Below are positions 34,505 to 61,687 of a DNA stretch of 64,000 bases, one piece after another; the first letter of the stretch is position 1, and the number at the start of each line of letters is the position of its first letter. Location: the IMG/VR virus record IMGVR_UViG_3300042895_001344, positions 124,001-188,000 of that record. One strand, written 5' to 3'. A program made the translations under genes and the position numbers. Below the pieces are notes generated by a model, which was not told the DNA's origin, searched no databases, and saw nothing but the letters and a program-made list of their open reading frames with translations.

Positions 34505-36232
34505 TTATATTGGTGTAGGGGTTGGAGTTGGTAAAGTATTCTGATCTACGAATCCAAAACAAACCGTACAATAGTTTTCTGTTTCAGTGTAATTAAAACT
34601 TACGCTACTTACCGTACCATCTATACGGATAATATTAAACCCTTCAATTCCTGTAAATTGAGTATATTGAGTTCCATTTACTGGGTTTTGGTATGTTGTA
34701 TCTAGTTCCCAAATTGGTGTGAATGGTGCGGAAACGATAACCGGAACGGATGTAATTGAATTACCCACACTAGCAAAGGCAATCAAAGGATTTGTAACTG
34801 GTTGACTAAATGTTGCGGTAAACACACCCATCGATGTATTTCGTATTTGAGTTCCACTAACCGGAACATTATATTCTTGAGGGAACGTTGTACCCTCATA
34901 CATACCTGAACTCTGTATTCCCATACCACCTACACTTTGTGTAACTGCAATAGTAATACCATTTTGACCTATACCTGATGCGGTTGAATCGGTAACTGAG
35001 TTAATAGTCATCCATTGAAATCCTAAACTTACAGGTGTTGCTGTAGGTGTAACAGTTGGCGTAGGAGTTGGACTTGGTGTCGATGTAGGAACCGGAGTTG
35101 GTGAAGGTGTTACTGTTGGTGTTGCCGTTGGTGGAACATATGCTCTCACGTCATCAACACAAGGTGCATTACATATTTCAAAAGTATATCCTGTTAATGT
35201 TCTAAAATTATGTTTAACGTGAATAAAATCTAATGGTTCTTCATAATATAATGCCGATTTAATATTAAACCCACATGTTTTTGATGTATTACCAAAATAA
35301 GTGTAGTTATATCCTCCACCCCAAGATTGTATTAAAGTTTGTTCGTCTCTATATGACGGTATAATCTCTTCCCAATTAGTTTCGGTATAAATTAAATTAC
35401 CATTTAAATAAAACTTTAAATCACCCAATCTCATATCTCTTTGTTCCGCCCATTTTTTATTTAATTCTTCAACATACTCAGTTGTAATTGTACCACCCGT
35501 AACCCAATCTTCTATTGTATTGGTAATTGTGTATCCTGTTGTGATTTGTGTTGATGTCATTGCGGTGACACCTGTTAATGGTTTAATAAATTCTACCGCA
35601 TGTGGACCTCTAATTAAATTGTTAAATCCACCCACATTATCCAAATCACAATCTGTAAATTCTTTATATCTATTAAAAACTATCGTTAAATTAAAATCAC
35701 TCGTATTTCCTGTTACACATAATACAGGTGTTTGACCATTTAAAAGACTATGTGTCTCAGTATAACCCGTAGTATTACAATAACCTGAATAATGATATGA
35801 AACCCACTTTACCCTACCATCATTTGTAAATTGAAATGATAAGTTATTATCCAAATAATTTGTATATGTAGTATCACCATCAACCCCGATATAGTAAAAA
35901 ATCGTACCTCCAGACCAATTTACTGAGTTTCTATTGAATACAAAATCCAACGTCCAACCCTTTTCTGTTCTTCTTCTAACCGTAAAATCACAGGTATCTC
36001 CCGTGTAACGACTAGCAACCGGAACAACCCATGGTTTCTGATCGTTTAAAGGTGTGGTTAAACAACTTGAGTCAATTGTAAGAGCACTATATGTGATTGG
36101 GGTAGTTAAATCTAACACATCTGTATCGTAATCAACCTCATTTGTGGTTAATTGATAGTCATAAAGTTCCGATGAATCTAACTTCAAATCCAATTTAGAT
36201 CCGTAATAGTTTAAAATATTCTGTCTATTCAT
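34505..36232 (-). CDS. Virion structural protein with PT linker and variable C-terminal domain
   Basis: Beta-rich N-terminal part, PT linker, second domain. Start moved to MNRQ (36232) because TATTTATA (36238-36245) falls between the two ATGs. Confidence 0.65.
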   Translation of the reverse strand: MNRQNILNYYGSKLDLKLDSSELYDYQLTTNEVDYDTDVLDLTTPITYSALTIDSSCLTTPLNDQKPWVVPVASRYTGDTCDFTVRRRTEKGWTLDFVFNRNSVNWSGGTIFYYIGVDGDTTYTNYLDNNLSFQFTNDGRVKWVSYHYSGYCNTTGYTETHSLLNGQTPVLCVTGNTSDFNLTIVFNRYKEFTDCDLDNVGGFNNLIRGPHAVEFIKPLTGVTAMTSTQITTGYTITNTIEDWVTGGTITTEYVEELNKKWAEQRDMRLGDLKFYLNGNLIYTETNWEEIIPSYRDEQTLIQSWGGGYNYTYFGNTSKTCGFNIKSALYYEEPLDFIHVKHNFRTLTGYTFEICNAPCVDDVRAYVPPTATPTVTPSPTPVPTSTPSPTPTPTVTPTATPVSLGFQWMTINSVTDSTASGIGQNGITIAVTQSVGGMGIQSSGMYEGTTFPQEYNVPVSGTQIRNTSMGVFTATFSQPVTNPLIAFASVGNSITSVPVIVSAPFTPIWELDTTYQNPVNGTQYTQFTGIEGFNIIRIDGTVSSVSFNYTETENYCTVCFGFVDQNTLPTPTPTPI

Positions 36233-36237
36233 TATAA

Positions 36238-36270
36238 TATAAATATCTTTCATAACATTTGATATTTATA
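36238..36270. promoter_or_regulatory. Back-to-back divergent late motifs
   Basis: TATTTATA on minus (36238-36245) and on plus (36263-36270). Confidence 0.75.
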
Positions 36271-36285
36271 TAAAAGTCTATTTAG

Positions 36286-37035
36286 ATGAATAATTTTATA
36301 AAACAGGTAATTGAGGAGAAATTTGCTTCAAAAGCACAACAAAGGTTCTTCTACGCTAAGGCGAATGAAAAGGGTAAACCCAAGAAAGAAAAGAAGAAAT
36401 GGTCTAAATGGGCTAAGGAGTTCTCCGATAAAACAGATTATGATGAAATCCCCGATAAAGTAGAGAAAGAGGAAGAAGTAGATGAAATCGTGGACGGTGC
36501 CGGTAATTTTGCTAAAAGTAAAAAACCAACTAACTCAAGAGCTGAAGTAACATCAAATTCAACAACTGATGAATTTGTATTAACAGGAGCGGGTCAATCG
36601 TCTATATCACCAAAATTAGGTATGGGTTTTAGAAGATATTGGGGTGAGTCTGATATGAGTAAAGCATTAGGTGCTGAAGATACAATTATGGATGATGCTA
36701 ATTATGAAGAAGCTAAAAAGAAATTTATTGAGTTGGGTGTAACTGACCCAAAGGAATTGGAAGATAGATTAGGACAAATGGGATATGATCCAAAATTACC
36801 AGACGATAAGGTGAGATTGGTAGAAAACCCTAAAAAATTCATGGAAGAATACATAGATAATCTTTTAAAACAAAAAGGAAAAGATAATGATGTATTACCC
36901 AAAGAAGAAGAGGTTGAGGAGATTGAAATCAATCCAATAGTTGTAAAACAAATAAAATCACTTAAAAATAGTATGAAAACTTATGGTCTTAAACCAGACC
37001 ATATTTTGAAAGGACTTAAAGACGATAATGAATAA
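36286..37035 (+). CDS. Late hypothetical (probable head-associated) protein
   Basis: VIEE followed by KFASKAQQRFFYA basic module; late motif at 36263-36270. Confidence 0.7.
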   Translation: MNNFIKQVIEEKFASKAQQRFFYAKANEKGKPKKEKKKWSKWAKEFSDKTDYDEIPDKVEKEEEVDEIVDGAGNFAKSKKPTNSRAEVTSNSTTDEFVLTGAGQSSISPKLGMGFRRYWGESDMSKALGAEDTIMDDANYEEAKKKFIELGVTDPKELEDRLGQMGYDPKLPDDKVRLVENPKKFMEEYIDNLLKQKGKDNDVLPKEEEVEEIEINPIVVKQIKSLKNSMKTYGLKPDHILKGLKDDNE

Positions 37036-37519
37036 AGAGTTAAAAAATAGGGACTTTGATTTACCACAGAACATTTTAGATAAGATCAACCACACGGTTA
37101 CAGGTCTTAACGGTCAAAATGTGCATGGGGTAATGAGAGCAAAAAAACTTTTAACCGATAAAAAAGTAACATATGGTCAACTTAAACGTATTATTCATGA
37201 CATACAAGGTATGGATAAAGTTGCTGATAAAATTAGGTATGACTTGGCTGGTGGTGATTTAATGGATACGTGGTCAAAACAATATCTTCAGGGTGAGAGA
37301 GATTTAATTCAAAATAGAAAAGAAGGTAGAAAACAGGCTGATGATATTTCAAGTACAACGGGAGAAAGAAAAAATAGTTTCTTAACGAAACATACAAAAA
37401 AATCAAGTTGGTTACCGTCATTTAAATTTAATTCTAATTCAGAAAAAAATTCAGTGGCGTCAATAAAATTAACAGGTTTATTTGAACAAGTTAATAGAAT
37501 AAAAAAATTAATGTTATAA
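37028..37519 (+). CDS. Late hypothetical protein with C-terminal LFEQVNRIKKLML tag
   Basis: Overlaps the previous gene; tag shared with 38213..38962 and 52324..53085. Confidence 0.7.
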   Translation: MNKELKNRDFDLPQNILDKINHTVTGLNGQNVHGVMRAKKLLTDKKVTYGQLKRIIHDIQGMDKVADKIRYDLAGGDLMDTWSKQYLQGERDLIQNRKEGRKQADDISSTTGERKNSFLTKHTKKSSWLPSFKFNSNSEKNSVASIKLTGLFEQVNRIKKLML

Positions 37520-37520
37520 T

Positions 37521-38213
37521 ATGGCAACAAAATTAGATCAAATATCAGAACAGTTTAGAAAAGAATCTATTACAAGAAATTCTTATAACGAAAAGAATTT
37601 ATATAATAGTCAAAATATTAATGCATTATCTAACGGAGATGAAAAAGGTAAAGGTCAAATTGGTGACAGCGATAAAATCGGTTCAACCACTGACATTCAA
37701 AATAGAATTTCAAGTTTAGGTAGAAACACTTACAATGAAAATAATCAATATAGTTTAACTAATCCAAATGCATTAGCAGATGGAGATGAAAAAGGAAGAG
37801 GTCAAAAAGAAGATAATGTTGCAATTGGAACATCTGTAGATATTGCAAATAGAAATTTATTATTAAGTAAAAACACATATAAATTAAATAATAAATATGG
37901 TGTTAACAATCCTAATGCAATGTCCGACGGTGATGAAAAAGGTAAGGGACAAAAAGGTGAAACAGGTGAGGTTGGTTCAAGAACTGACGTGTTAAAAAGA
38001 ACTGAAAATTTAGTAAAAAATAAGTTTAATAAAAAGAATTTATATAATAGTACAAATCCTGATGCAATTTCTGACGGAGATGAAAATGGTAAAGGACCTA
38101 AAGATGAAAATGGAACTGTTGGTTCTAAAACTGATATTTTAAAAAGAACCGAAAATACTGGTAAGAATAGTTATAACTCTAAAAAAGAATATAATAGACA
38201 TCCAACAGAATAA
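37521..38213 (+). CDS. Tandem-repeat protein (four 49-aa units plus a partial fifth)
   Basis: NPNAxSDGDEKGKG core; GGA/GGT-GAT-GAA starts at 37635, 37782, 37929, 38076 (147-nt period). Confidence 0.85.
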   Translation: MATKLDQISEQFRKESITRNSYNEKNLYNSQNINALSNGDEKGKGQIGDSDKIGSTTDIQNRISSLGRNTYNENNQYSLTNPNALADGDEKGRGQKEDNVAIGTSVDIANRNLLLSKNTYKLNNKYGVNNPNAMSDGDEKGKGQKGETGEVGSRTDVLKRTENLVKNKFNKKNLYNSTNPDAISDGDENGKGPKDENGTVGSKTDILKRTENTGKNSYNSKKEYNRHPTE

Positions 38214-38962
38214 TGAGTTTTACAAATACAATCTTCAAAATACTTGAAGAACAAAATATTTTAAGGACATCAAAAACTAAACCTATAGTTGATTCAATCA
38301 AAAATAGGAATAAGATTTCTTTTTTTTATACTGGTCCAAGAAAACCTGCAAAAGATAGTGTTAAACCTGGTAAAAGAATTGATGCCGAAGCAGTGGCTTT
38401 AGGGTTAAGTAAAAGAGGTAATTTAGTTATTCGTGCATATGTCCAACCACCTTCAGTATCCAAAAAAGGATTTGATAAAACAGGTTGGAGAACTTTTATG
38501 GTTAGTAGAATGAGTGATTTAAGAATTAGCGATGAAAAATTTGATCAGAAGAGACCCGACTATAAAGAAGGTGATGATAAATCAATGAGTGTTACTTACG
38601 TAACAACAGATTGGACAAATAAACCTGAGGTTAAGAAACCAAGGATTGTTAAACCAAAACCAAGTGTCCCTTCGGCAACTGCAACAACTCAATCAACTCC
38701 AAGTGTTGACCCGACAACAACAACTACACCTGAGGAACCAAAAACAACAGAACTACCACAACCAAAAACTCAAACTAAACCTGAGAAAGTTGTACCAAAA
38801 CCTGAACCAACAAAAACAGAACCTGAAACAACAGAACCTAAAACACAAGAATTACCTCAACCAAAACAAACAGAAAAACCAGTTGCAAATCCTGAAGAGG
38901 ATGAGGAAAATAAAAATTTACAAGAAAGTATTAAAAATATTAAGCGTTTAATGTTTTCTTAA
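38213..38962 (+). CDS. Stand-alone WYL-domain protein with Pro/Thr/Glu/Lys linker and C-terminal LQESIKNIKRLM tag
   Basis: SIKNRNKISFFY...R..E..ALG......IRAY...GWRTFMVSRM fits the WYL fold; no HTH. Confidence 0.7.
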   Translation: MSFTNTIFKILEEQNILRTSKTKPIVDSIKNRNKISFFYTGPRKPAKDSVKPGKRIDAEAVALGLSKRGNLVIRAYVQPPSVSKKGFDKTGWRTFMVSRMSDLRISDEKFDQKRPDYKEGDDKSMSVTYVTTDWTNKPEVKKPRIVKPKPSVPSATATTQSTPSVDPTTTTTPEEPKTTELPQPKTQTKPEKVVPKPEPTKTEPETTEPKTQELPQPKQTEKPVANPEEDEENKNLQESIKNIKRLMFS

Positions 38963-51669: not shown

Positions 51670-52323
51670 ATGAAAGTAATTAAACTAAAAGAAAACGATC
51701 TTAGAAAATATATTGCTAAGATTATAAAGGAAAATCAATCAACCGAAAACTATATGTTTTTCAGTAATTTACAACAAATACATAGACAATGTGAGATGTT
51801 GATGAAAATGGATCCACAAGAGTTAGATCAAATTATTAAAAACGGTCACGATTGGGCGGACGATCATGTATCTGAAGCTAAGAACAATATGGATCAAGTT
51901 TTTGATTTCTTTATGAATGAAACTAAAAGTAAAGATAAACAAGATGTTACTGCCGATATGGATCAGTTTAGTATGAACGAAGAAGGACAACTTGACGAAA
52001 AATGTTGGGATGGGTATAAACAAGTTGGTAGTAAGAAAAAAGGTGGAAAAATGGTACCGAATTGTGTACCTGTAAGTGAAGCAAGTAGTCCTGCACAACA
52101 AGCTGCAATTGCAATCAATATGAAGAAAAAGGGTGTTGAACCTAAAAATGAGTCATACGGTGAAATAGACGAAAGTAAGAACTGTCCAACAGACCCTGCG
52201 AAGTGGGCAGCATCAAAGGCTAAAGCTAAATCTAAATTTGACGTCTATCCTTCAGCATATGCAAATGGATTCGCGGCGAAAGATTATAAAGCAAAAGGTG
52301 GTGGTTGGAGAAAATGTAAATAG
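51670..52323 (+). CDS. Modular basic protein (probable internal head protein)
   Basis: Leader MKVIKLKENDLRKYIAKIIKE; modules KCWDGYKQVG...PNCVP, SSPAQQAAIAI, CPTDPAKW...GGGW, each starting after xxE. Confidence 0.65.
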   Translation: MKVIKLKENDLRKYIAKIIKENQSTENYMFFSNLQQIHRQCEMLMKMDPQELDQIIKNGHDWADDHVSEAKNNMDQVFDFFMNETKSKDKQDVTADMDQFSMNEEGQLDEKCWDGYKQVGSKKKGGKMVPNCVPVSEASSPAQQAAIAINMKKKGVEPKNESYGEIDESKNCPTDPAKWAASKAKAKSKFDVYPSAYANGFAAKDYKAKGGGWRKCK

Positions 52324-53085
52324 ATGAATTTAGAAGAGAACATACAAAGAATTAAACAAATGATGATTTCTGAGGAGATGGTACAATCTGATGCTTGGAA
52401 GTCTTTAAAGAAGACATTAGATGTTCTTAAAAAGAAGAAAAAAGTTTTACTATTAAGTTGTTCTAATAGACACAATTGGGACGAAAATGATATTGATATA
52501 CCAAAATCTAAAATGATTGCGATGTATCTTAACGAAGAATTAGGTGACAAATCCGTTTTAATAGATGTACCTGAACTTAAGATATTTCCTTGTGAAGGTA
52601 ACGTATCAAGAAAAGACGGAGATTCATGTGGAGTATTAAAATCTAAACTTGAAGACAAGGACAAAAATCCTTCAGGTCATCATAGATGTTGGGCAAGTAT
52701 AAACAACAAATCAGATGAACTTTGGAAAATATCTAAAGAACTATTTGAATCGGACGCGGTTATATTTTTTAGTTCAATAAGGTGGGGACAGACAAATATG
52801 TATTATCAAAATCTAATTGAAAGACTTAATTGGATTGAAAATAGACATACAACACAAAATGAATCAAACATAGTAAAAGATATTGAATCTGGATATATTT
52901 GTACGGGACATAATTGGAATGGAAGTAACGTTGTTGATCTACAAAAACAAGTTCATTCATTTTATGGATTCAAACCAAACGATGATATATATTGGAATTG
53001 GCAGTATACTAAAGATATTAACGACGAAAGTCAAAAATCATATAAAGATTCTCATGATAAATTCATAAAAGACACTAAATTATAA
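52324..53085 (+). CDS. Flavodoxin-fold NAD(P)H-dependent FMN reductase / iron-sulfur flavoprotein-like protein with N-terminal tag
   Basis: LLLSCSNR, PCEG...SCG...RCW, ESDAVIFFSSIRWG...QNLIERL; extra leader MNLEENIQRIKQMM. Confidence 0.75.
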   Translation: MNLEENIQRIKQMMISEEMVQSDAWKSLKKTLDVLKKKKKVLLLSCSNRHNWDENDIDIPKSKMIAMYLNEELGDKSVLIDVPELKIFPCEGNVSRKDGDSCGVLKSKLEDKDKNPSGHHRCWASINNKSDELWKISKELFESDAVIFFSSIRWGQTNMYYQNLIERLNWIENRHTTQNESNIVKDIESGYICTGHNWNGSNVVDLQKQVHSFYGFKPNDDIYWNWQYTKDINDESQKSYKDSHDKFIKDTKL

Positions 53086-53086
53086 T

Positions 53087-53365
53087 ATGAGAATAATAAT
53101 AACCGAAGACCAAAAAAATAAAATTATGAATAGTAATGATTGGGTGGAAACAAACGGTAAATTAATTAAAACATTTTATTTTAAAGATTATAAGGAAGTT
53201 ATGTCATTTGCTAATGAGGTGATGAAAATTGCCAACAAACAAAATCATCACCCCGATATGACGGTTCATTATGATAATGTAAAGTTATCAATTACAGACC
53301 ACGATAAGGGTAAGGTGTCCGATAAGTGTCATAAATTTGTTAATGAGGTAAATAAAATTATATAA
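53087..53365 (+). CDS. phhB: Pterin-4-alpha-carbinolamine dehydratase with short leader
   Basis: W...KLIKTFYFKDY...F...HHPD...TDHDKG.VS; leader MRIIITEDQ. Confidence 0.85.
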   Translation: MRIIITEDQKNKIMNSNDWVETNGKLIKTFYFKDYKEVMSFANEVMKIANKQNHHPDMTVHYDNVKLSITDHDKGKVSDKCHKFVNEVNKII

Positions 53366-53366
53366 C

Positions 53367-54119
53367 ATGAAAATTATTGTTTCAAAGGAAGATAAAGAAT
53401 ATATAAACGAATGTCTTAAATCAGGTGAGGTTTTAAAAGAAGATCTTACAAGGTGGTTTAAAGAGAAGTGGGTAGATGTTAGTAAAAAGGTAGATGGTAA
53501 ACACCCACCTTGTGGTAGAAAAGATGCTGATGGTAAATCGTATCCTAAATGTAGACCTTCTAAAAAAGTGTCTAAAGAAACTCCAAAAGTTGCCTCTTCA
53601 TATGATAAAAAAGAAAAGAAAGCAATGACTTCACAAAAAAGAAGAGCAGAAAAGAAAGACCCTAAAGTGGGTAAGGGTAATAAACCAACAATGACTAAAT
53701 TTGATGAGAATATGGAAAAGAGAACAATAATTCAAATATCTGAAGATCAATTCGAAAGACTATTTGAATACAACGAAGAAACTCCTGTATTGATATATGA
53801 GGATGAGTTTGGATCAATAGAAAATACTAAATTTGAATACGACTTAGGTCTTTTAAATGAGGCTGAGTATCAAGGACGTAAAGTTCAACTTGGTAAAATC
53901 ATGCAAGGGGACGTAAAGAAATCAAAAGTTTATGTTAAGAACGATAAAGGTAAAGTCGTTAAAGTAAACTTTGGTTTTGGTGGTAAATCCGCTAAAGGTA
54001 AACGAATGGTTATTAAGAAAAATAACCCTGCAAGACGTAAATCATTTAGAGCACGTATGAATTGTGATAATCCAGGTCCTCGTTGGAAACCAAGATATTG
54101 GGCTTGTAGAACTTGGTAA
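53367..54119 (+). CDS. Modular basic protein (probable internal head protein)
   Basis: LKE then DLTRWFKEKWVD...PCGR...YPKCRP module; LNE then AEYQGRKV...RRKSFRARMNC...RYWACRTW module. Confidence 0.7.
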   Translation: MKIIVSKEDKEYINECLKSGEVLKEDLTRWFKEKWVDVSKKVDGKHPPCGRKDADGKSYPKCRPSKKVSKETPKVASSYDKKEKKAMTSQKRRAEKKDPKVGKGNKPTMTKFDENMEKRTIIQISEDQFERLFEYNEETPVLIYEDEFGSIENTKFEYDLGLLNEAEYQGRKVQLGKIMQGDVKKSKVYVKNDKGKVVKVNFGFGGKSAKGKRMVIKKNNPARRKSFRARMNCDNPGPRWKPRYWACRTW

Positions 54120-54503: not shown

Positions 54504-56261
54504 TTATCTTAATGTATCTAAACCAAACACTTGGATACCTTGTACATCGATTACACCGAAGTAACGGTTGTTCACCATTTTCTTTGCGTAACGTGTCATG
54601 ATACCTTTGATTGGAGTCATGTTGAATGGATTGTACATTGTAGGAGTTAATTGTAATGGCACATATGGTGCGTATACATAACCTGCATCTAACAATGATT
54701 TTCCTTTATGACCGATCAAGATTTTGTTAGCTGGGAAGTAAGGATCACGATACACTTGGTAACGACCACCTACTGTACCGATTTTCTCGATACCCATGTT
54801 ATATTGATCTTGTTCTGGTTCTGCGTTAGAAACGTGGAAATACTCTAAATCATCGAATACTGCAGAAACTTCTGAAGAAACAACGATCCAGTTAGCACCA
54901 CCTCTTAACGTAGTTTTGTGGATTTGAGCAGAAATTTGGTTGATTTTTGTAACCAAAGTTTGGTTCCAATCTTTTTGAGTGTAACCTTGTAAAGTTGAGT
55001 TTCCAGATCCACCGTATTTCCATCCATTGTAATCCCATTTAGCTTTCCATGCTGCACCTTTACGTAAGTCACGTAAGATTTCACGGTCAACCTCAGCAGC
55101 GATTTGCTCTGATAATAAAGCTGTCAATTCAGCTTCAGCGTCGATGTTGTGGAACGCACTAACATCTTGTGCTAATTCTGGAGACCAGCTAGCTCTTAAT
55201 TTTCTTTCAGTTACAGAAACTGTTACTGATTCTAAATCAAAAGATACTTCACCAATTTGATCTTCAAACTCCAAAGTATCGTACTTGCGATAAGAAGCGT
55301 TGAATTCTGTTCTTGCTAAAGTTGAACCTGTTACTTCGTAATCAGAAAAACCCGAAGTTGGGTCGTATTTTTGTAAATCTACTTGTACATAGATTTTACC
55401 GTCAGTATCACAAATATCGTAGAAATTTTGTGTTGCGTTAGTTGTTTTAGCACCGTATTCTACAATACCTTTACCGTACTTTTGAGTAACGATATTGATT
55501 GGTAATGAAGTACCTGTAGTTGCACCTAAGAAAGCTAATAAGTTAGCATCTGAAGTGAAAACTTGTAATGAAGCTAAGAATTCTTCAGAATCCATTTCAT
55601 TACCGTCTGGTCCTTTCAATTTACCTGCACCTGCAGATTCAAATCCTTCTAATTCTAAAATTACATAAGATTTAGTTGTACCGGTATTAATAGCAGATGT
55701 ACTTGTAGTAACTTCACCGTTAGAGAAAGTTGTGAAACCATTTACAGTTAATGCGCTAACAGAATAAGCACCTTTTGAATAATCAAAAAGACCTTGTTCT
55801 AAGTCGTCATTAGCTTCGTAGAAACGATCGTAAAGATTCTTAGCACCTGTATTATAACCTGCTGTTGCAGCGTCAGAGTTACCTGGCATACCGTAAGGAG
55901 AGTAATGACCGTTAGCGTCAGTTCTCTCTTGGATTTTAGGTACGAAGAAGAACAATTTACCGATTGGTAAGTTCATAGCTTGTACAGACACGATGTCGTT
56001 AGCTAATAATTTAGAGAATACACGACGAATGATAGGGAAAACTACAGTCTCGAAAGAACCAGACGCATCAGCTACTGCTGCTTCGTTGATTAAGTAAGAC
56101 GCTTGGTTTTCATACAATTGCGCGATGTTATCTTTTTGGTGACCACCAAGACCCTCTAAGAATCCTAATTCGTCCCATTTTTTAATGGTATCTTCTTTGA
56201 TAACTCTAAGGTGCTTAAGACCTATGTTACCAACCATACCGCTTTCTAATAATGCTCCCAT
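54504..56261 (-). CDS. gp23: Major capsid protein (T4 gp23-like)
   Basis: IVSVQAMNLPIG, ERKLRASWSPELAQD, AEAELTALLSEQIAAEVDREIL, DAGYVYAPYVPL, KGIMTRYA. Confidence 0.97.
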   Translation of the reverse strand: MGALLESGMVGNIGLKHLRVIKEDTIKKWDELGFLEGLGGHQKDNIAQLYENQASYLINEAAVADASGSFETVVFPIIRRVFSKLLANDIVSVQAMNLPIGKLFFFVPKIQERTDANGHYSPYGMPGNSDAATAGYNTGAKNLYDRFYEANDDLEQGLFDYSKGAYSVSALTVNGFTTFSNGEVTTSTSAINTGTTKSYVILELEGFESAGAGKLKGPDGNEMDSEEFLASLQVFTSDANLLAFLGATTGTSLPINIVTQKYGKGIVEYGAKTTNATQNFYDICDTDGKIYVQVDLQKYDPTSGFSDYEVTGSTLARTEFNASYRKYDTLEFEDQIGEVSFDLESVTVSVTERKLRASWSPELAQDVSAFHNIDAEAELTALLSEQIAAEVDREILRDLRKGAAWKAKWDYNGWKYGGSGNSTLQGYTQKDWNQTLVTKINQISAQIHKTTLRGGANWIVVSSEVSAVFDDLEYFHVSNAEPEQDQYNMGIEKIGTVGGRYQVYRDPYFPANKILIGHKGKSLLDAGYVYAPYVPLQLTPTMYNPFNMTPIKGIMTRYAKKMVNNRYFGVIDVQGIQVFGLDTLR

Positions 56262-56283: not shown

Positions 56284-57582
56284 TTATTTTATTTTTCTCA
56301 TCATTTCTTTAATTCTACTGAATTGAGGATTTTCATAAGCTTTTGACTCAGATAATACCTCTGTAGAAGAAGATGTTGATGGAGTGTTAGAGATTTTTTT
56401 CGCAACTGATTCGGTAACCGTAGTTTTTGAACCTAATTCAGTTTTGATTGTTGAGAATAAAGACTTAGCTTCATTCATAGTAGAAACTGTATCAAATCTC
56501 TTTAATATATTCAATTTCTCTTGTTTTGTAGTTGAATGTTCAGTAAACAAACGTGTAGCGTAAGCTAAGTTTGCATTGAATACTGCAACTTCATTTAGTT
56601 TATCCTTGAATAATACTAACGCCTTTTTATATTCAGCATTTTGTTTTTTCAATGTTTCAACTTGTTCGTTGATACCTGAACCCGCTTTGTACATTTTTTT
56701 AGATGGTAAACCAGCTCTTTTCATACCGTTCTTGTTTCCATGAGGGTTTGATTTTGTACGTGCAGCTTCTGTAGCTTCAACTTTTTTAGGTTCTTCAACC
56801 TCGTCTTCCTCGTCTAATTCGATTTCATAGATAGTTTCTTCGTCAGCTTCTAATTCGTCTTCAGCATCAACATCTTCCATATCGGTTTCTGTATCAACAT
56901 CAGATTCTAAATCAGAATCAACGTCTGTATCCATTCCACTCATATCAACGTCGGAATCAACGTCAGAATCAACATCTGTATCTAAGTCAGCTCCCATGTC
57001 CATTCCAGTATCAAGATCAGAATCTTCACTATCTAATTTGATAATGTATTCATTTTCTCCGTCACCGAATTCGACATTGTTACCGTCTTTTTTAACTACA
57101 ATACCATCTTCTGGTTTCATAGCCTTGAATACTTTAAGAACTTCATCGTCTGAAGCACCTGTCATATCCATAACGTCTTCATCATCCATTGAACCTTCGT
57201 CACTCATAGATTCCATATCAGTACCCATATCGGTACCCATGTCATCCATGTCAACATCAGTGTCAACATCCGAATCAACGTCATCTGTTGAGTCTAAGTT
57301 ATCGAGGTCTGTATCTGTATCAACATCTGTATCAACGTCTTCTTCAGATTCATCATCTGTGTCTTCGTCGTCAGCTGTTACATCTTGTTCTGCCTCTTCT
57401 TCAGGTTTAGCAACTTCTTCATCAGTTGTTGTTTCTTCCTCTTCTTCCAATGATTCTTTTAGCAAATCTTTAAGTTCTTCCTTCATTGTTGAAGCAAGTA
57501 TACCTTTTGCATTTTGCTTTACGGCCTCTTCAAGATTTTGTACTTGAAGTAACGCTTGTTCTAAAATTGATTTTTCGCTCAT
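56284..57582 (-). CDS. Prohead core scaffold protein with long acidic linker
   Basis: Between protease and MCP; helical ends, Asp-rich repeats, LNEVAVFNANL motif, many LxE sites. Confidence 0.8.
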   Translation of the reverse strand: MSEKSILEQALLQVQNLEEAVKQNAKGILASTMKEELKDLLKESLEEEEETTTDEEVAKPEEEAEQDVTADDEDTDDESEEDVDTDVDTDTDLDNLDSTDDVDSDVDTDVDMDDMGTDMGTDMESMSDEGSMDDEDVMDMTGASDDEVLKVFKAMKPEDGIVVKKDGNNVEFGDGENEYIIKLDSEDSDLDTGMDMGADLDTDVDSDVDSDVDMSGMDTDVDSDLESDVDTETDMEDVDAEDELEADEETIYEIELDEEDEVEEPKKVEATEAARTKSNPHGNKNGMKRAGLPSKKMYKAGSGINEQVETLKKQNAEYKKALVLFKDKLNEVAVFNANLAYATRLFTEHSTTKQEKLNILKRFDTVSTMNEAKSLFSTIKTELGSKTTVTESVAKKISNTPSTSSSTEVLSESKAYENPQFSRIKEMMRKIK

Positions 57583-57671: not shown

Positions 57672-58355
57672 TTATTTAGATAGAAATGTATCTAAATTGC
57701 CCATAAGTTTAGACATTCTACTGTCAAGTGTTGGTTTCTTAATTTCCGCTTCTTGATATTGGTCTCTTTCTGATGGGTCTTTAAAAATATAAGCACCGGG
57801 AGTTGATGGTGATGATACTAAATCAAAACAAACTAATTCGAAATCATCTTGTACGATGTTTTCTCCTTTAACTTGTTTAAGTGATCCTACACCACGTGAA
57901 GAGATACCTAAAGTTGCCCCGTTCATTAATAACATCGCAGCTTGATCTCCTTTGGTTGAAACGATACCCATCTTCTTCCATCCAGGAGAAGTGAATAACT
58001 TGATTTTACCCATAAGGATTCTACCGTCCCACCAAGTTTCTAAAATTGAATGTGATACTCGATCTAAATCGATTAGTGAAGATGAAGGGTGATTTAATTC
58101 ATTTAATGCTCCACCCTTTTTAATTAGTGATTGATATTTTTCGTTTTCTCTCTTAAGTAACATTTCAGGATATATCCTTCCGTTCTTATTTGGAGTATCG
58201 AATTTTTGTAAAACAGCATAAAGGATTAGATCTTCAGAGAAGTCCACACCCTTCATTTCCTGTATAATTTTTTTATTCTCTTCTGGAGATACGTGTCCTG
58301 CGTCGTATTCTATTAAAATTCCTGTTCCAAGTTCTTTGGGTCCTAATATCTTCAT
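57672..58355 (-). CDS. gp21: Prohead maturation protease (gp21-like)
   Basis: PNKNGRIYP, ELNHP (His), LGISSRGVGS (Ser), FDLVSSPSTPGA. Confidence 0.95.
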   Translation of the reverse strand: MKILGPKELGTGILIEYDAGHVSPEENKKIIQEMKGVDFSEDLILYAVLQKFDTPNKNGRIYPEMLLKRENEKYQSLIKKGGALNELNHPSSSLIDLDRVSHSILETWWDGRILMGKIKLFTSPGWKKMGIVSTKGDQAAMLLMNGATLGISSRGVGSLKQVKGENIVQDDFELVCFDLVSSPSTPGAYIFKDPSERDQYQEAEIKKPTLDSRMSKLMGNLDTFLSK

Positions 58356-59845: not shown

Positions 59846-61687
59846 TTAATCGTTTAAGATATCATTTATTTTTGTCTCTATTTCATAAATATTCTGTTGA
59901 GCTTTTTCCATATCAAACAGAATATTAAAATCTTCTTTTTCTTCACCTAACATACCAAGTATTTTAGATTTTTTTGATTTTTTAGCTAATGTAGATTCAC
60001 TCAAAGGTTCCTCTCCTCCACCCGCTGGTGGCGGTGGTGCTCCACCTCCCATATCCATTCCTCCACCTCCCATATCCATTCCTCCACCCGCTTCTGCTCC
60101 TGCGGCTTCCATTGCCTTTTCTCTATCCTCTTCAGGAATACCATACTTAGCATCTACCTCATCAAATACACCTGAACGTTTAATAACATTCTGAGTATTC
60201 GTTAATTCAAATCCTAATGCACGTTCTAAACGTTGTTGTTGTAAGTCTAACATAACTTCACTATCACTAAATCCAAGGATATTTTTCTTAGCCCATGTAT
60301 GTGATACTGGTAAGATACCCACTTGAGATTGATCCGATGTTGCGTCTTTATAAAGTGTTACTTTTTCTTTCCATTGTTCAATACGTAATAAATCAGATTG
60401 TGCTGATGGGTTAGTTAATGATAATGAGAAATTATTTAATTCATCCTCCATACCTAAAAGGTATAATTGAATTAATGCAATTTTATTTAATTCTTGAATA
60501 ACAGATTTTTGAATTCTATTAATAGTTCTAGCAAAACGAATATCCATTAAAGCTAAACTCTTACCTTCACCGACAACTTCTTCAAATCCTAAGAACGCTT
60601 TAGGTATACGTAATGCGGCTAACATCTTCTTTTGAATGTATTCAATATCAGCAATCTCTCCTAAGTTTTGTGCTCCTGGTAATGTTTCAATTGGATTAGA
60701 TTGTGATGGATCACGAACAGGAATAAAATAATCCTGATCAACAGCCATTTGATTATATCTCATATCGACTTGACCGTTACGTGGATCTGAAATCTGATCT
60801 CTTTTAAATTTGTTTGCAACACGTTGTACGTAAGATTCAATATCCTTATCATCCATATTACCAACGAATACTTTGAATACACGTCTTTCAGGTGCTCTTG
60901 ATGTTCTATAGATTAACATGGCATCTTCAGCAAGTAAAAGTTGTTTCCAAATACGTCTAATTTTATCTAACATAGAAGTACCGTAAGGTAACTTTCTATC
61001 ATCACCTAATAATCTAAAGTGAGCAATTTCCCATGCTTGAAATTCCAAATCTTTGTTCTTCCATTGAAAACGTAATTCTCTTGATGGAACTTTTAAATCT
61101 CTATTTTGTGTTGTGGTCTTACCCGCGGCACCTTCAATTCTTTCAATTTCAATATTTGGTAATTGTTGACATCCGATGATACCTTTTTCGGGATCTAACT
61201 TTAAATAAACAAAGTTGTCACCATACTTACAAACACCTCTAGTCCACATTTGTAAGTTAGTATTAACGTCTAATCTGTTATTAAATAAATCTTCTAATAT
61301 TTCTTTAATTCTATCTGATTCAGAATAGATCGTTAAAATTTGACCCTTTTCAGACATTGTAGTGGATTCTTCCGCATATATGTCTAACGCTGCAGATATT
61401 TCAGGAGTAAACTCCATCGCCTCATAATCGTAATAAGCTGCTAATCTATTTGGTTCATAATAAACCGATTGGTTATAGAGAGATTGGTCTAATTTAGTCC
61501 ATTTATCAGCGATGTATTGACTCTGTTGAGCCTGTAACATTGCCTTATCATAATCTTCTTTGTTATCTGTTTTTAATAATTCATCTTTACTGAAATTAAA
61601 TGAAGGTGCCTGTGTTACCTGAGGTTTCCCTGGGTACCCAAACATCTTTGTTAATTTCTGAAATACAGTTAAATTTTGATTTGCCAT
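59846..61687 (-). CDS. gp20: Portal protein (T4 gp20-like)
   Basis: PEISAALDIYAEE, IAHFRL, PYGTSML, LLLAEDAMLIYRTSRAPERRVF, DYFIPVR, IETLPGAQNLGEIADIEY. Confidence 0.97.
   Translation of the reverse strand: MANQNLTVFQKLTKMFGYPGKPQVTQAPSFNFSKDELLKTDNKEDYDKAMLQAQQSQYIADKWTKLDQSLYNQSVYYEPNRLAAYYDYEAMEFTPEISAALDIYAEESTTMSEKGQILTIYSESDRIKEILEDLFNNRLDVNTNLQMWTRGVCKYGDNFVYLKLDPEKGIIGCQQLPNIEIERIEGAAGKTTTQNRDLKVPSRELRFQWKNKDLEFQAWEIAHFRLLGDDRKLPYGTSMLDKIRRIWKQLLLAEDAMLIYRTSRAPERRVFKVFVGNMDDKDIESYVQRVANKFKRDQISDPRNGQVDMRYNQMAVDQDYFIPVRDPSQSNPIETLPGAQNLGEIADIEYIQKKMLAALRIPKAFLGFEEVVGEGKSLALMDIRFARTINRIQKSVIQELNKIALIQLYLLGMEDELNNFSLSLTNPSAQSDLLRIEQWKEKVTLYKDATSDQSQVGILPVSHTWAKKNILGFSDSEVMLDLQQQRLERALGFELTNTQNVIKRSGVFDEVDAKYGIPEEDREKAMEAAGAEAGGGMDMGGGGMDMGGGAPPPPAGGGEEPLSESTLAKKSKKSKILGMLGEEKEDFNILFDMEKAQQNIYEIETKINDILND
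60040..60088. repeat. 21-bp tandem repeat in portal C-terminal tail
   Basis: CTCCACCTCCCATATCCATTC twice plus a partial copy; encodes GMDMGGG. Confidence 0.85.

Follow-up and report, generated by a model that had tools for sequence, protein, structure and literature searches.

Three module genes and their probable role as T4-like head-internal precursors

In phage T4, basic internal proteins are directed to the head by a capsid targeting sequence (CTS) and processed by gp21, as textbooks describe, and in adenoviruses the viral protease trims the precursors pVII and pre-mu inside the capsid to small, very basic DNA-associated peptides. Here we describe three genes, designated A, B, and C, located in a 64,000-nucleotide stretch of DNA (the window; bases 124001 to 188000 of the 217,142-bp, 31.6% G+C virus record IMGVR_UViG_3300042895_001344 in IMG/VR), in which small modules follow one another behind a hydrophobic-x-Glu tripeptide, referred to here as the mark. 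The genome is that of a 217-kb distant T4-like phage and the window includes its head-gene block. With better than even probability, we take A, B, and the N-terminal part of C to encode head-internal precursors comparable to the T4 internal proteins but organized as polyproteins of basic two-Cys modules and acidic spacers; the support for this reading is comparative throughout.

The T4 CTS is MKTYQEFIAE (PMC8442874), and residues 8 and 10 of these 10 residues (P3 and P1) govern processing, with hydrophobic-x-Glu being the gp21 motif (PMC9026906). The T4 core proteins and the head proteins of giant phages are multiply cut, with some fragments staying in the head and with redundant sites in the propeptides (PMC5694885, PMC9026906). 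The genes described here resemble those for T4 IPI, IPII, IPIII, and Alt in the gp21-type (Peptidase_S77, here S77) protease, a leader ending in hydrophobic-x-Glu, basic mature parts, and a homolog found in virions, and, as with Alt, enzyme cargo follows the same leader in relatives. Unlike the case of IPI to IPIII, there are two Cys per module, the A and B leaders are longer (21 to 25 residues), and the mature parts share no sequence similarity with those of the T4 proteins; moreover, where T4 internal proteins are cut once, several unrelated mini-modules here share a single gene, set apart by marks of the cleavage type and by long acidic spacers. No IPI, IPII, IPIII, or Alt family is present among the Pfam and PHROGs matches, and all PHROGs matches are to families of unknown function.

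One precursor that the prohead protease cuts at several Glu sites is also a feature of T4 gp22, gp67, and gp68, from which the internal peptides derive, and of head proteins of phiKZ, 201phi2-1, and SPN3US. The T4 core peptides that are retained are acidic scaffold remnants, however, whereas the predicted products of A and B are conserved basic mini-domains that are separate genes elsewhere, and the phiKZ-type giant phages differ in using the motif S/A/G-x-E and in having large ejection or inner-body proteins as products. The shuffling of domains, the location near virion genes, and the predicted packaging and delivery with a proposed proteolytic release are shared with the polyvalent proteins (Iyer et al. 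2017, PMC5512222), but these are large, enzyme rich, and usually have their own metallopeptidase, whereas A, B, and C are small, contain no enzyme or peptidase domain detectable with Pfam, and are predicted to be cut in trans by the head protease at a defined tripeptide; none shows the hallmark of polyvalent proteins, at least two effector or enzyme domains in one polypeptide, frequently accompanied by an embedded peptidase. The adenovirus core precursors are an analogy only, the virus, protease, and sequences all being unrelated to those of this phage. In the literature on DUF5872, on the CTS in cyanophages, and on polyproteins and internal head proteins, we found no description of strings of small, autonomous, basic Cys-pair modules separated by such marks, nor of their wide spread in aquatic T4-like phages or their occurrence as single genes in protease-less viruses.

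Gene A specifies a leader, an acidic spacer, and modules M1, M2, and M3; gene B has a leader, M4, an acidic spacer, and M5; and gene C has a short leader, a basic AQQ-type module, and a longer part of mixed charge (Table 1). The original prediction, made from the sequence without database searches, described these three open reading frames (ORFs) as polyprotein-like genes, and the translations agree with its description. All six junctions that it listed are present, namely LDE/KCWDGY, VSE/ASSPAQQ, IDE/SKNCPTDP, LKE/DLTRWF, LNE/AEYQGRKV, and IEE/KFASKAQQ (the slash follows the junction Glu). Its description of acidic spacers and strongly basic modules applies to the spacers (net charges of -13 and -10) and to M1, M3, M4, and M5, but not to M2 (-1) or to most of C, in which the charge is mixed past the first ~45 residues. 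Within gene B, the net charge is +15 over residues 26 to 126, which include the M4 unit, and -10 over spacer residues 127 to 165. M1, M3, M4, and M5 contain exactly two Cys each. No further ORF among all those of the genome holds the A, B, or C modules.

Conservation of the mark and autonomy of the modules

The original prediction placed the module starts behind Glu, which by itself is circular; redefining them by means of homology, stand-alone genes, and Cys covariation gave the same register. We surveyed 150 representatives of 50%-identity clusters, anchoring each module on its conserved core and scoring any [LIVMF]xE that ends 0 to 4 residues upstream. The mark precedes 73% of M1 copies (n = 113), 62% of M2 (n = 42), 95% of M3 (n = 120), 64% of M4 (n = 58), and 100% of M5 (n = 11), compared with 12% for random positions of the same proteins, 2.4% of whose positions are filled by [LIVMF]xE. 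The check suggested in the original prediction, whether homologs carry the modules in shuffled order, each behind xxE, comes out in its favor.

At the modal register, P1 is Glu in 69 to 95% of copies and P3 is L, I, V, M, or F in 61 to 86% (background, 19%), while P2 shows hardly any constraint (D, N, E, K, L, Q, C, T, and others) and P1' is module specific (A or K in M1, A in M2, K in M3, D in M4, and A in M5). Judged from the sequences, this combination of a P1 Glu, a hydrophobic P3, and a free P2 is a pattern matching T4 gp21 recognition. An Asp at P1 prevents processing in T4. The junction Glu is one residue before the Cys in 71 of 113 M1 copies and directly ahead of D-L-R/T-x-W-F in 37 of 58 M4 copies; M2 has a P1' Ala in 38 of 42 copies and a P1 Glu in 40 of 42, and hydrophobic-x-E/A stands ahead of all 11 copies of M5. 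Insertions shift the mark away from the core, yet it stays (LAE/KKGPCW, IDE/KKKNDDPCW, ITE/KKKKPKPTSP), and this variable spacing argues against the mark being part of the fold. Large relatives have repeated ..EQIDE/ separators, and the mark is also found before enzyme domains, as in LEE/GVNDPG ahead of P-loop kinases. We considered and judged unlikely that the mark is an integral part of each fold, given both the variable spacing and the stand-alone genes without it.

Among all proteins of this genome, [LI]xE occupies 1.16% of positions and [LIV]xE 1.5%. There are four [LI]xE tripeptides in A, six in B, and two in C, and 5 of these 12 are exactly on junctions. Sites not preceding a module are LKE-8, IKE-21, and VSE-69 in A, and INE-15, FDE-114, ISE-126, LFE-134, and IYE-145 in B, and the B spacer sites are conserved in 85 to 100% of 120 homologs. 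An origin of the mark by chance or composition was rejected, with a background of 1.2 to 2.4% per position and 12% at random positions versus 62 to 100% at junctions.

Of the records examined, every one of the 22 that are S77 positive (this genome, 17 IMG/VR contigs, PANV1, Melnitz, HTVC008M, and S-SM1) has the mark ahead of a module, but only 2 of the 15 that are S77 negative and complete or nearly so have it (Fisher p = 5e-8, for lineages that are not independent). Viruses without S77 encode the modules as small genes of their own, in which the sequence after the initial Met begins at the residue that follows the junction Glu in this phage. Stand-alone M3 genes are present in DSL-LC04 (between the capsid and cement genes and the adaptor gene), C72C1, L137, L164, and L169 and include P0275 and P0276, and stand-alone M5 genes are pelagisiphophage Kolga gp56, roseopodophage CRP-902 gp67, and ORF21 of a Nitrosopumilaceae spindle-shaped virus. 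Their N termini match the junctions: M-SKNVPNNP in L137 corresponds to IDE/SKNCPTDP in gene A, M-AKYQGR in Kolga gp56 to LNE/AEYQGR in gene B (CRP-902 and the spindle-shaped virus are similar), and M-ACWKGY in P0198 to xxE/ACW. S77-positive pelagimyophage HTVC008M has M5 in gp131 behind a 46-residue acidic leader ending in LEE/AEFQGK, and in S77-positive contig L106 the leader MIKLKDIISEEVLEE is found on an M3 gene of 63 residues, two genes past that for the protease. By this sequence comparison, the modules are autonomous proteins elsewhere, as the units of a polyprotein should be.

Several N-terminal leaders resemble the T4 CTS. A CTS-type arrangement (~10 residues with an aromatic residue at position 4, hydrophobicity at 7 to 8, and Glu at 10) is present in gene C and in many relatives of A and B, and a loose form of the pattern begins at residue 1 in 30 of 146 representatives. 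Near-copies of the T4 CTS include MKTYKEFREA, MKTYKEFIQN, MKTFKQYLGE/DLRQWF, MKTFKQLREE, and, in PANV1 gp34, MKTFKQFTLE/K. The gene C leader, MNNFIKQVIEE, is 100% conserved in 118 homologs of down to 62% identity, and no other of the genome's 214 ORFs reproduces the spacing of the T4 CTS exactly. In P0127 and P0199 the type of leader found in A immediately precedes M1, in L106 it immediately precedes M3, and the longer helical leader of B, like that of A, is also directly before modules in relatives.

A member of this group has been recovered from virions. Mass spectrometry of purified S-SM1 virions gave 13 peptide counts for T4-GC119, a gene of 1488 nt (PMC3037559 Table S8, Sullivan et al. 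2010), and it corresponds to SSM1_115, the sole S-SM1 gene with a CW module, which carries M3'-, M4-, and DUF6321-type modules besides M1. Across 16 cyanophages, genes of the T4-GC119 family are between 276 and 2985 nt long (PMC3037559), which fits cassette gain and loss. Indirectly, this detection in virions, for which the table states neither an apparent size nor a position in the particle, suggests that the products described here may lie inside the mature head of this phage. A cyanophage cytidylyltransferase detected in virions, T4-GC190, was considered as a module carrier in S-SM1 and ruled out, with the CW module there being only in T4-GC119. We found no virion proteomics of PANV1 in the literature.

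The modules are abundant and freely combined. Gene A has more than 7800 homologs and gene B at least 8000, and a phmmer search of the A module part against 1.84 billion cluster representatives gave 4181 matches (50%-identity clusters), in proteins of 69 to 1045 residues with modules in every order and number. DUF5872 (PF19197) is divided here, with profile positions 1 to 38 matching A residues 173 to 211 (M3) and positions 41 to 115 matching B residues 8 to 97 (M4); B passes the gathering threshold of 27.5 bits (49.6 bits) and A is below it (14.2 bits). The DUF5872 "domain" is thus two separable modules, M3 and M4, coded here by two different genes. PHROG profiles of 50, 81 (phrog_23735, M4), and 96 (phrog_7595, M5) positions correspond to one module each. 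Cyanomyophage proteins with shuffled modules include T4-GC119 of S-BM3, gp114 of S-RIM8, a "structural protein" of RN05-S, and a cytidylyltransferase fusion of C48C1. Zeta_toxin/AAA_33-type kinases and cytidylyltransferases are fused to the same modules and marks in some relatives, and the further Pfam families DUF6321, DUF5824, and DUF5661 are also found among relatives; Pfam assigns no function to DUF5872, and an ESM Atlas look-up of M3 matches only viral hypothetical and DUF5872 clusters. Relatives of B at 78 to 81% identity (289 to 319 residues; P0410, P0431, P0458, P0516, and others) have an extra cassette exactly after FDE-114, either a basic unit of 40 residues that lies between VDE/ and LSE/ or a four-Cys unit CxC...CxxC, and these length variants are a cassette polymorphism within one phage population.

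The M1 residues C1, W2, G9, K11, and C21 are invariant (alignment A1). M3 residues Cys172 and Cys216 covary, with KNC.. accompanying ..GGGWxxC and KNV.. accompanying ..GGGWKSVS (relatives P0128 to P0266). A second M3 covariation is seen in another subfamily (P0135, P0147, P0214), which has DVCPSAYCNG instead of DVYPSAYANG; each of the two covariations is suggestive of disulfides or metal sites in proteins that are synthesized in the cytoplasm. In the AlphaFold2 (AF2) model of gene A, only M3 is confident (pLDDT, a per-residue confidence score, of 71 to 86), forming a compact unit that starts at residue ~170 with a strand at 171 to 173, two helices, and a strand at 213 to 215, and the junctions fall in low-confidence linkers. 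Because the two end strands pair, the M3 start is fixed to within 3 residues of the junction Glu, independently of the earlier definition. The model of gene B has a mean pLDDT of 50.

Archaeal viruses also carry modules: a CW module is present in ORF44 of the Halorubrum tailed virus BLv36 (L005), and the Nitrosopumilaceae virus with the M5 gene (L176) is not a head-tail virus, indicating that the modules are far older or more mobile than the T4-like lineage. BLv36 ORF44 was entertained as a protease-scaffold fusion and dropped, with no support from Pfam or PHROGs. In S77-negative phages that probably infect actinobacteria (L034, L026, L015, L051, L006, and L008), a CW module is joined to a domain of the DUF5824 type, and this domain (..AVYRRGAGA.SSSHRPG..WA.ARVNAFL..) is shared with cytidylyltransferase proteins of Melnitz and HTVC008M.

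Proposed processing and competing explanations

We propose that the short amphipathic N-terminal leader would carry each precursor into the assembling prohead core, where the S77 prohead protease would cut after the Glu of hydrophobic-x-Glu, at the end of the leader and between modules, to free basic mini-proteins (M1, M3, M4, and M5) of 27 to 90 residues. Expected products are peptides of 27, 31, and 49 residues from A, units of about 89 and 85 residues from B, and a C protein without its first 10 to 11 residues. The Cys pair of each module probably forms a disulfide within the module or binds a metal. The acidic spacers could neutralize or mask the basic modules in the precursor until assembly and then be lost like T4 propeptides (PMC5694885), whereas the basic products would remain with the packaged DNA and might enter the host alongside it. 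Cutting at the marks, a place in the head of this phage, what becomes of the fragments, their binding to DNA, and a possible action after injection are all inferred.

The proposed processing agrees with retention of the mark ahead of five unrelated modules, its covariation with S77, the register of the stand-alone genes, the CTS-like leaders, and the virion homolog. The polyprotein interpretation of the original prediction is supported in part, for A and B by the conservation of the mark, the S77 covariation, and the stand-alone register; gene C has one convincing site only, at its N-terminal leader.

Several observations weigh against these proposals. T4 internal proteins are cut once only and thus set no precedent for internal cutting. 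VSE-137, between M1 and M2, is a weaker, degenerate site, with P3 being V, T, or I in close relatives and often Thr, and M2 is not basic. The A and B leaders (21 to 25 residues, ending in IKE-21 and LKE-25) lack the exact T4 CTS spacing. The mark also occurs after leaders of 3 to 4 residues (MLTE/KNVPT in L132, MFLE/KN in P0209, and MNE/DLRKWF in P0274), which are too short to target anything and fit a mark that is carried along with its module. Two S77-negative records keep the mark (LEE/DPCW in BLv36 and VKE/A in L055), the S77-negative examples come from few lineages, several of them interrelated, and many of the metagenomic contigs are fragments. Peptides of 3 to 5 kDa might also leak out of the capsid.

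The main alternative, rather unlikely although several observations fit it, is that the proteins are cut a single time after the leader, like IPI to IPIII, and that a multi-module DNA-binding product is kept intact as beads on a string, its internal marks being leftovers of a time when every module had a leader directly ahead of it, or being retained on grounds other than cleavage. Internal proteins of T4 are cleaved once beside the CTS (PMC8442874), many relatives have a module directly behind a 9- to 10-residue leader, so that shuffling could bring the junction along, very short "leaders" (MLTE, MFLE, and MNE) also occur, and the S-SM1 homolog is reported just as a structural protein with no size stated. 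Leftover sites would decay, however, yet P1 and P3 are retained at 61 to 95%, with P2 free, across clusters that are less than 50% identical. The several conserved sites in the acidic spacers of A and B are also like those of the multiply cut T4 and phiKZ-type propeptides (PMC5694885), and the predicted products match stand-alone genes residue for residue. The same stand-alone genes bear on a different possibility, that the mark is a structural or linker feature, such as a capping and packing residue, of ordinary cytoplasmic nucleic acid binders with no relation to the prohead protease. We think this improbable: a fixed register with the core in most M3 (E-K-N-x-P-T) and M4 (E-D-L-R) copies, occurrence at true N termini, and the lack of functional annotation in Pfam and PHROGs would agree with it, but the stand-alone M3 and M5 genes are entirely without the mark, its spacing is variable in many copies, the same mark precedes five unrelated folds and enzyme domains, and neither the covariation with S77, the CTS-like leaders, nor the homolog in virions is expected of such a feature.

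It is also conceivable that the precursors are cut at the marks but that the modules act chiefly as injected effectors or antidefense factors, or as scaffold or core parts needed only for assembly. Relatives in which modules and marks are fused to Zeta-toxin/AAA_33-type kinases and cytidylyltransferases recall T4 Alt and the polyvalent proteins (PMC5512222), T4 IPI is an antirestriction factor (PMC3012670), and cassette turnover in close relatives fits an arms race. Generic nucleic acid binding is favored instead by the strong positive charge and by the presence of the modules in widely differing viruses, one of them archaeal and spindle shaped, and we give the effector or scaffold roles little credence, noting that nothing here separates them from DNA condensation.

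Should basic head-internal products indeed be released by cutting at the marks, very abundant "hypothetical" genes of marine and freshwater T4-like phages would gain a concrete biogenesis and location, and several DUF families would become separable, shuffled head-internal modules. T4 targeting and processing would be used far beyond the coliphages, in a polyprotein format new to the phage internal-protein literature that we searched. Exact N termini and product masses would be predictable for the cultured phages S-SM1 (SSM1_115), HTVC008M (gp131), Melnitz (gp18), and PANV1 (gp34), and the natural leaders and small DNA-binding cargo could be used for packing proteins into phage heads. A broader and more tentative suggestion, possible but short of probable, is that aquatic T4-like phages share a combinatorial set of Cys-locked cationic mini-proteins, made as acid-neutralized precursors and released in the prohead, that coat or condense the genome and enter the host, and that are encoded as single genes in non-T4 viruses such as podoviruses, siphoviruses, and a spindle-shaped archaeal virus. 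If true, this would be an old, widespread class of virion nucleic acid-binding proteins and a phage counterpart of the adenovirus core peptides, and DUF5872, DUF6321, and others would gain a function.

The head-gene block and neighboring genes

The identification of the gene at 57672..58355 as a prohead protease in the original prediction is confirmed by its Peptidase_S77 match and by alignment to T4 gp21 (PDB 5JBL), in which the ELNHP, SSRG, and DLVSSPS motifs (His/Ser/Asp) are retained; LIE-16 near its N terminus has a counterpart in LIE-9 of T4 gp21. The capsid, S77 protease, portal, and acidic scaffold genes are all 0.4 to 6 kb from gene B. Among cultured phages, the capsid protein has its closest relatives in Microcystis phage Mel-JY01 and the Flavobacterium "immuto" phages, at only ~38% identity. 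Hydrophobic-x-E sites end at its residues 6, 23, 36, 51, and 60, with 7 more in the remaining 525 residues, and its residue 70 aligns with residue 26 of mature T4 gp23. The scaffold-like protein has no family match in Pfam or PHROGs.

Table 1. Coordinates of genes A, B, and C, their predicted parts, and other features of the window
Feature	Coordinates	Strand	Basis
Gene A, 217 residues, predicted head-internal precursor: leader, acidic spacer, M1, M2, M3	51670..52323	+	ORF list
A residues 1-21, amphipathic leader containing LKE-8, ending IKE-21	51670..51732	+	AF2 helix 8-21
A residues 22-110, acidic spacer, net -13, ending LDE-110	51733..51999	+	Charge count; low-confidence helical in AF2
M1, CW.GY...VPNC module, 27 residues, net +4, two invariant Cys, then VSE-137	52000..52080	+	Alignment A1
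M2, AQQAAIAI module, 31 residues, about neutral (net -1), ending IDE-168	52081..52173	+	Homolog alignment
M3, PTxP..W...PSAYANG...GGGW module, 49 residues, net +9	52174..52320	+	N-terminal half of Pfam DUF5872
Two genes between A and B, same gene string: unknown 253-residue protein; pterin-4a-carbinolamine dehydratase homolog, 92 residues	52324..53365	+	
Gene B, 250 residues: leader, M4, acidic spacer, M5	53367..54119	+	ORF list; Pfam DUF5872, 49.6 bits
M4 unit, B residues 26-114, DLxxWF...C...C and basic tail ending FDE-114	53442..53708	+	C-terminal half of DUF5872
B residues 115-165, acidic spacer with ISE-126, LFE-134, IYE-145, ending LNE-165	53709..53861	+	
M5, AEYQGRKV...NCDNPGP..YWAC..W module, 85 residues, net +21, two Cys	53862..54116	+	phrog_7595
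Gene C, 249 residues: 11-residue leader MNNFIKQVIEE, basic AQQ-type module, longer mixed-charge part	36286..37035	+	
TATAAATA, T4-type late-promoter-like octamer, 41 nt upstream of gene C	36238..36245	+	
Major capsid protein, gp23 type	54504..56261	-	Pfam Gp23, E=9e-73
Very acidic scaffold-like protein between protease and capsid genes	56284..57582	-	16 hydrophobic-x-E sites
Prohead protease, T4 gp21 type	57672..58355	-	Pfam Peptidase_S77 (PF03420), E=1.7e-21; phrog_207
Portal	59846..61687	-	Pfam/PHROGs scans

The TATAAATA octamer ahead of gene C is weak evidence, because such octamers are not enriched window-wide (23 found versus 17.4 expected). The scaffold-like protein contains long D/E-rich stretches with repeated DVDTDVDS-type units, and the portal protein has a C-terminal low-complexity tail, GGGMDMGGGGMDMGGG..PPPP. 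The Pterin_4a homolog (53087..53365, Pfam E=5e-18) is in an odd location for a metabolic gene, amid a structural gene string. In all 217 kb of the genome, the motif [IV]x[RN]IKx[LM]M is found just three times, at the C termini of both genes after C (37028..37519 and 38213..38962; ..VNRIKKLML and ..IKNIKRLMFS) and at the N terminus of the gene following A (52324..53085; ..IQRIKQMM..), and may be a further signal shared within this gene set. The 230-residue protein encoded at 37521..38213 consists of about four tandem ~47-residue repeats with ..N(A/P)(L/M/I)SDGDEKGKGQ.. and matches no PHROGs family. Long Pro/Thr-rich linkers are present in two neighboring proteins of unknown function, PTPTVTPSPTPVPT.. 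at 34505..36253 (minus strand) and ..TTTTPEEPKTTELPQPK.. at 38213..38962 (plus strand).

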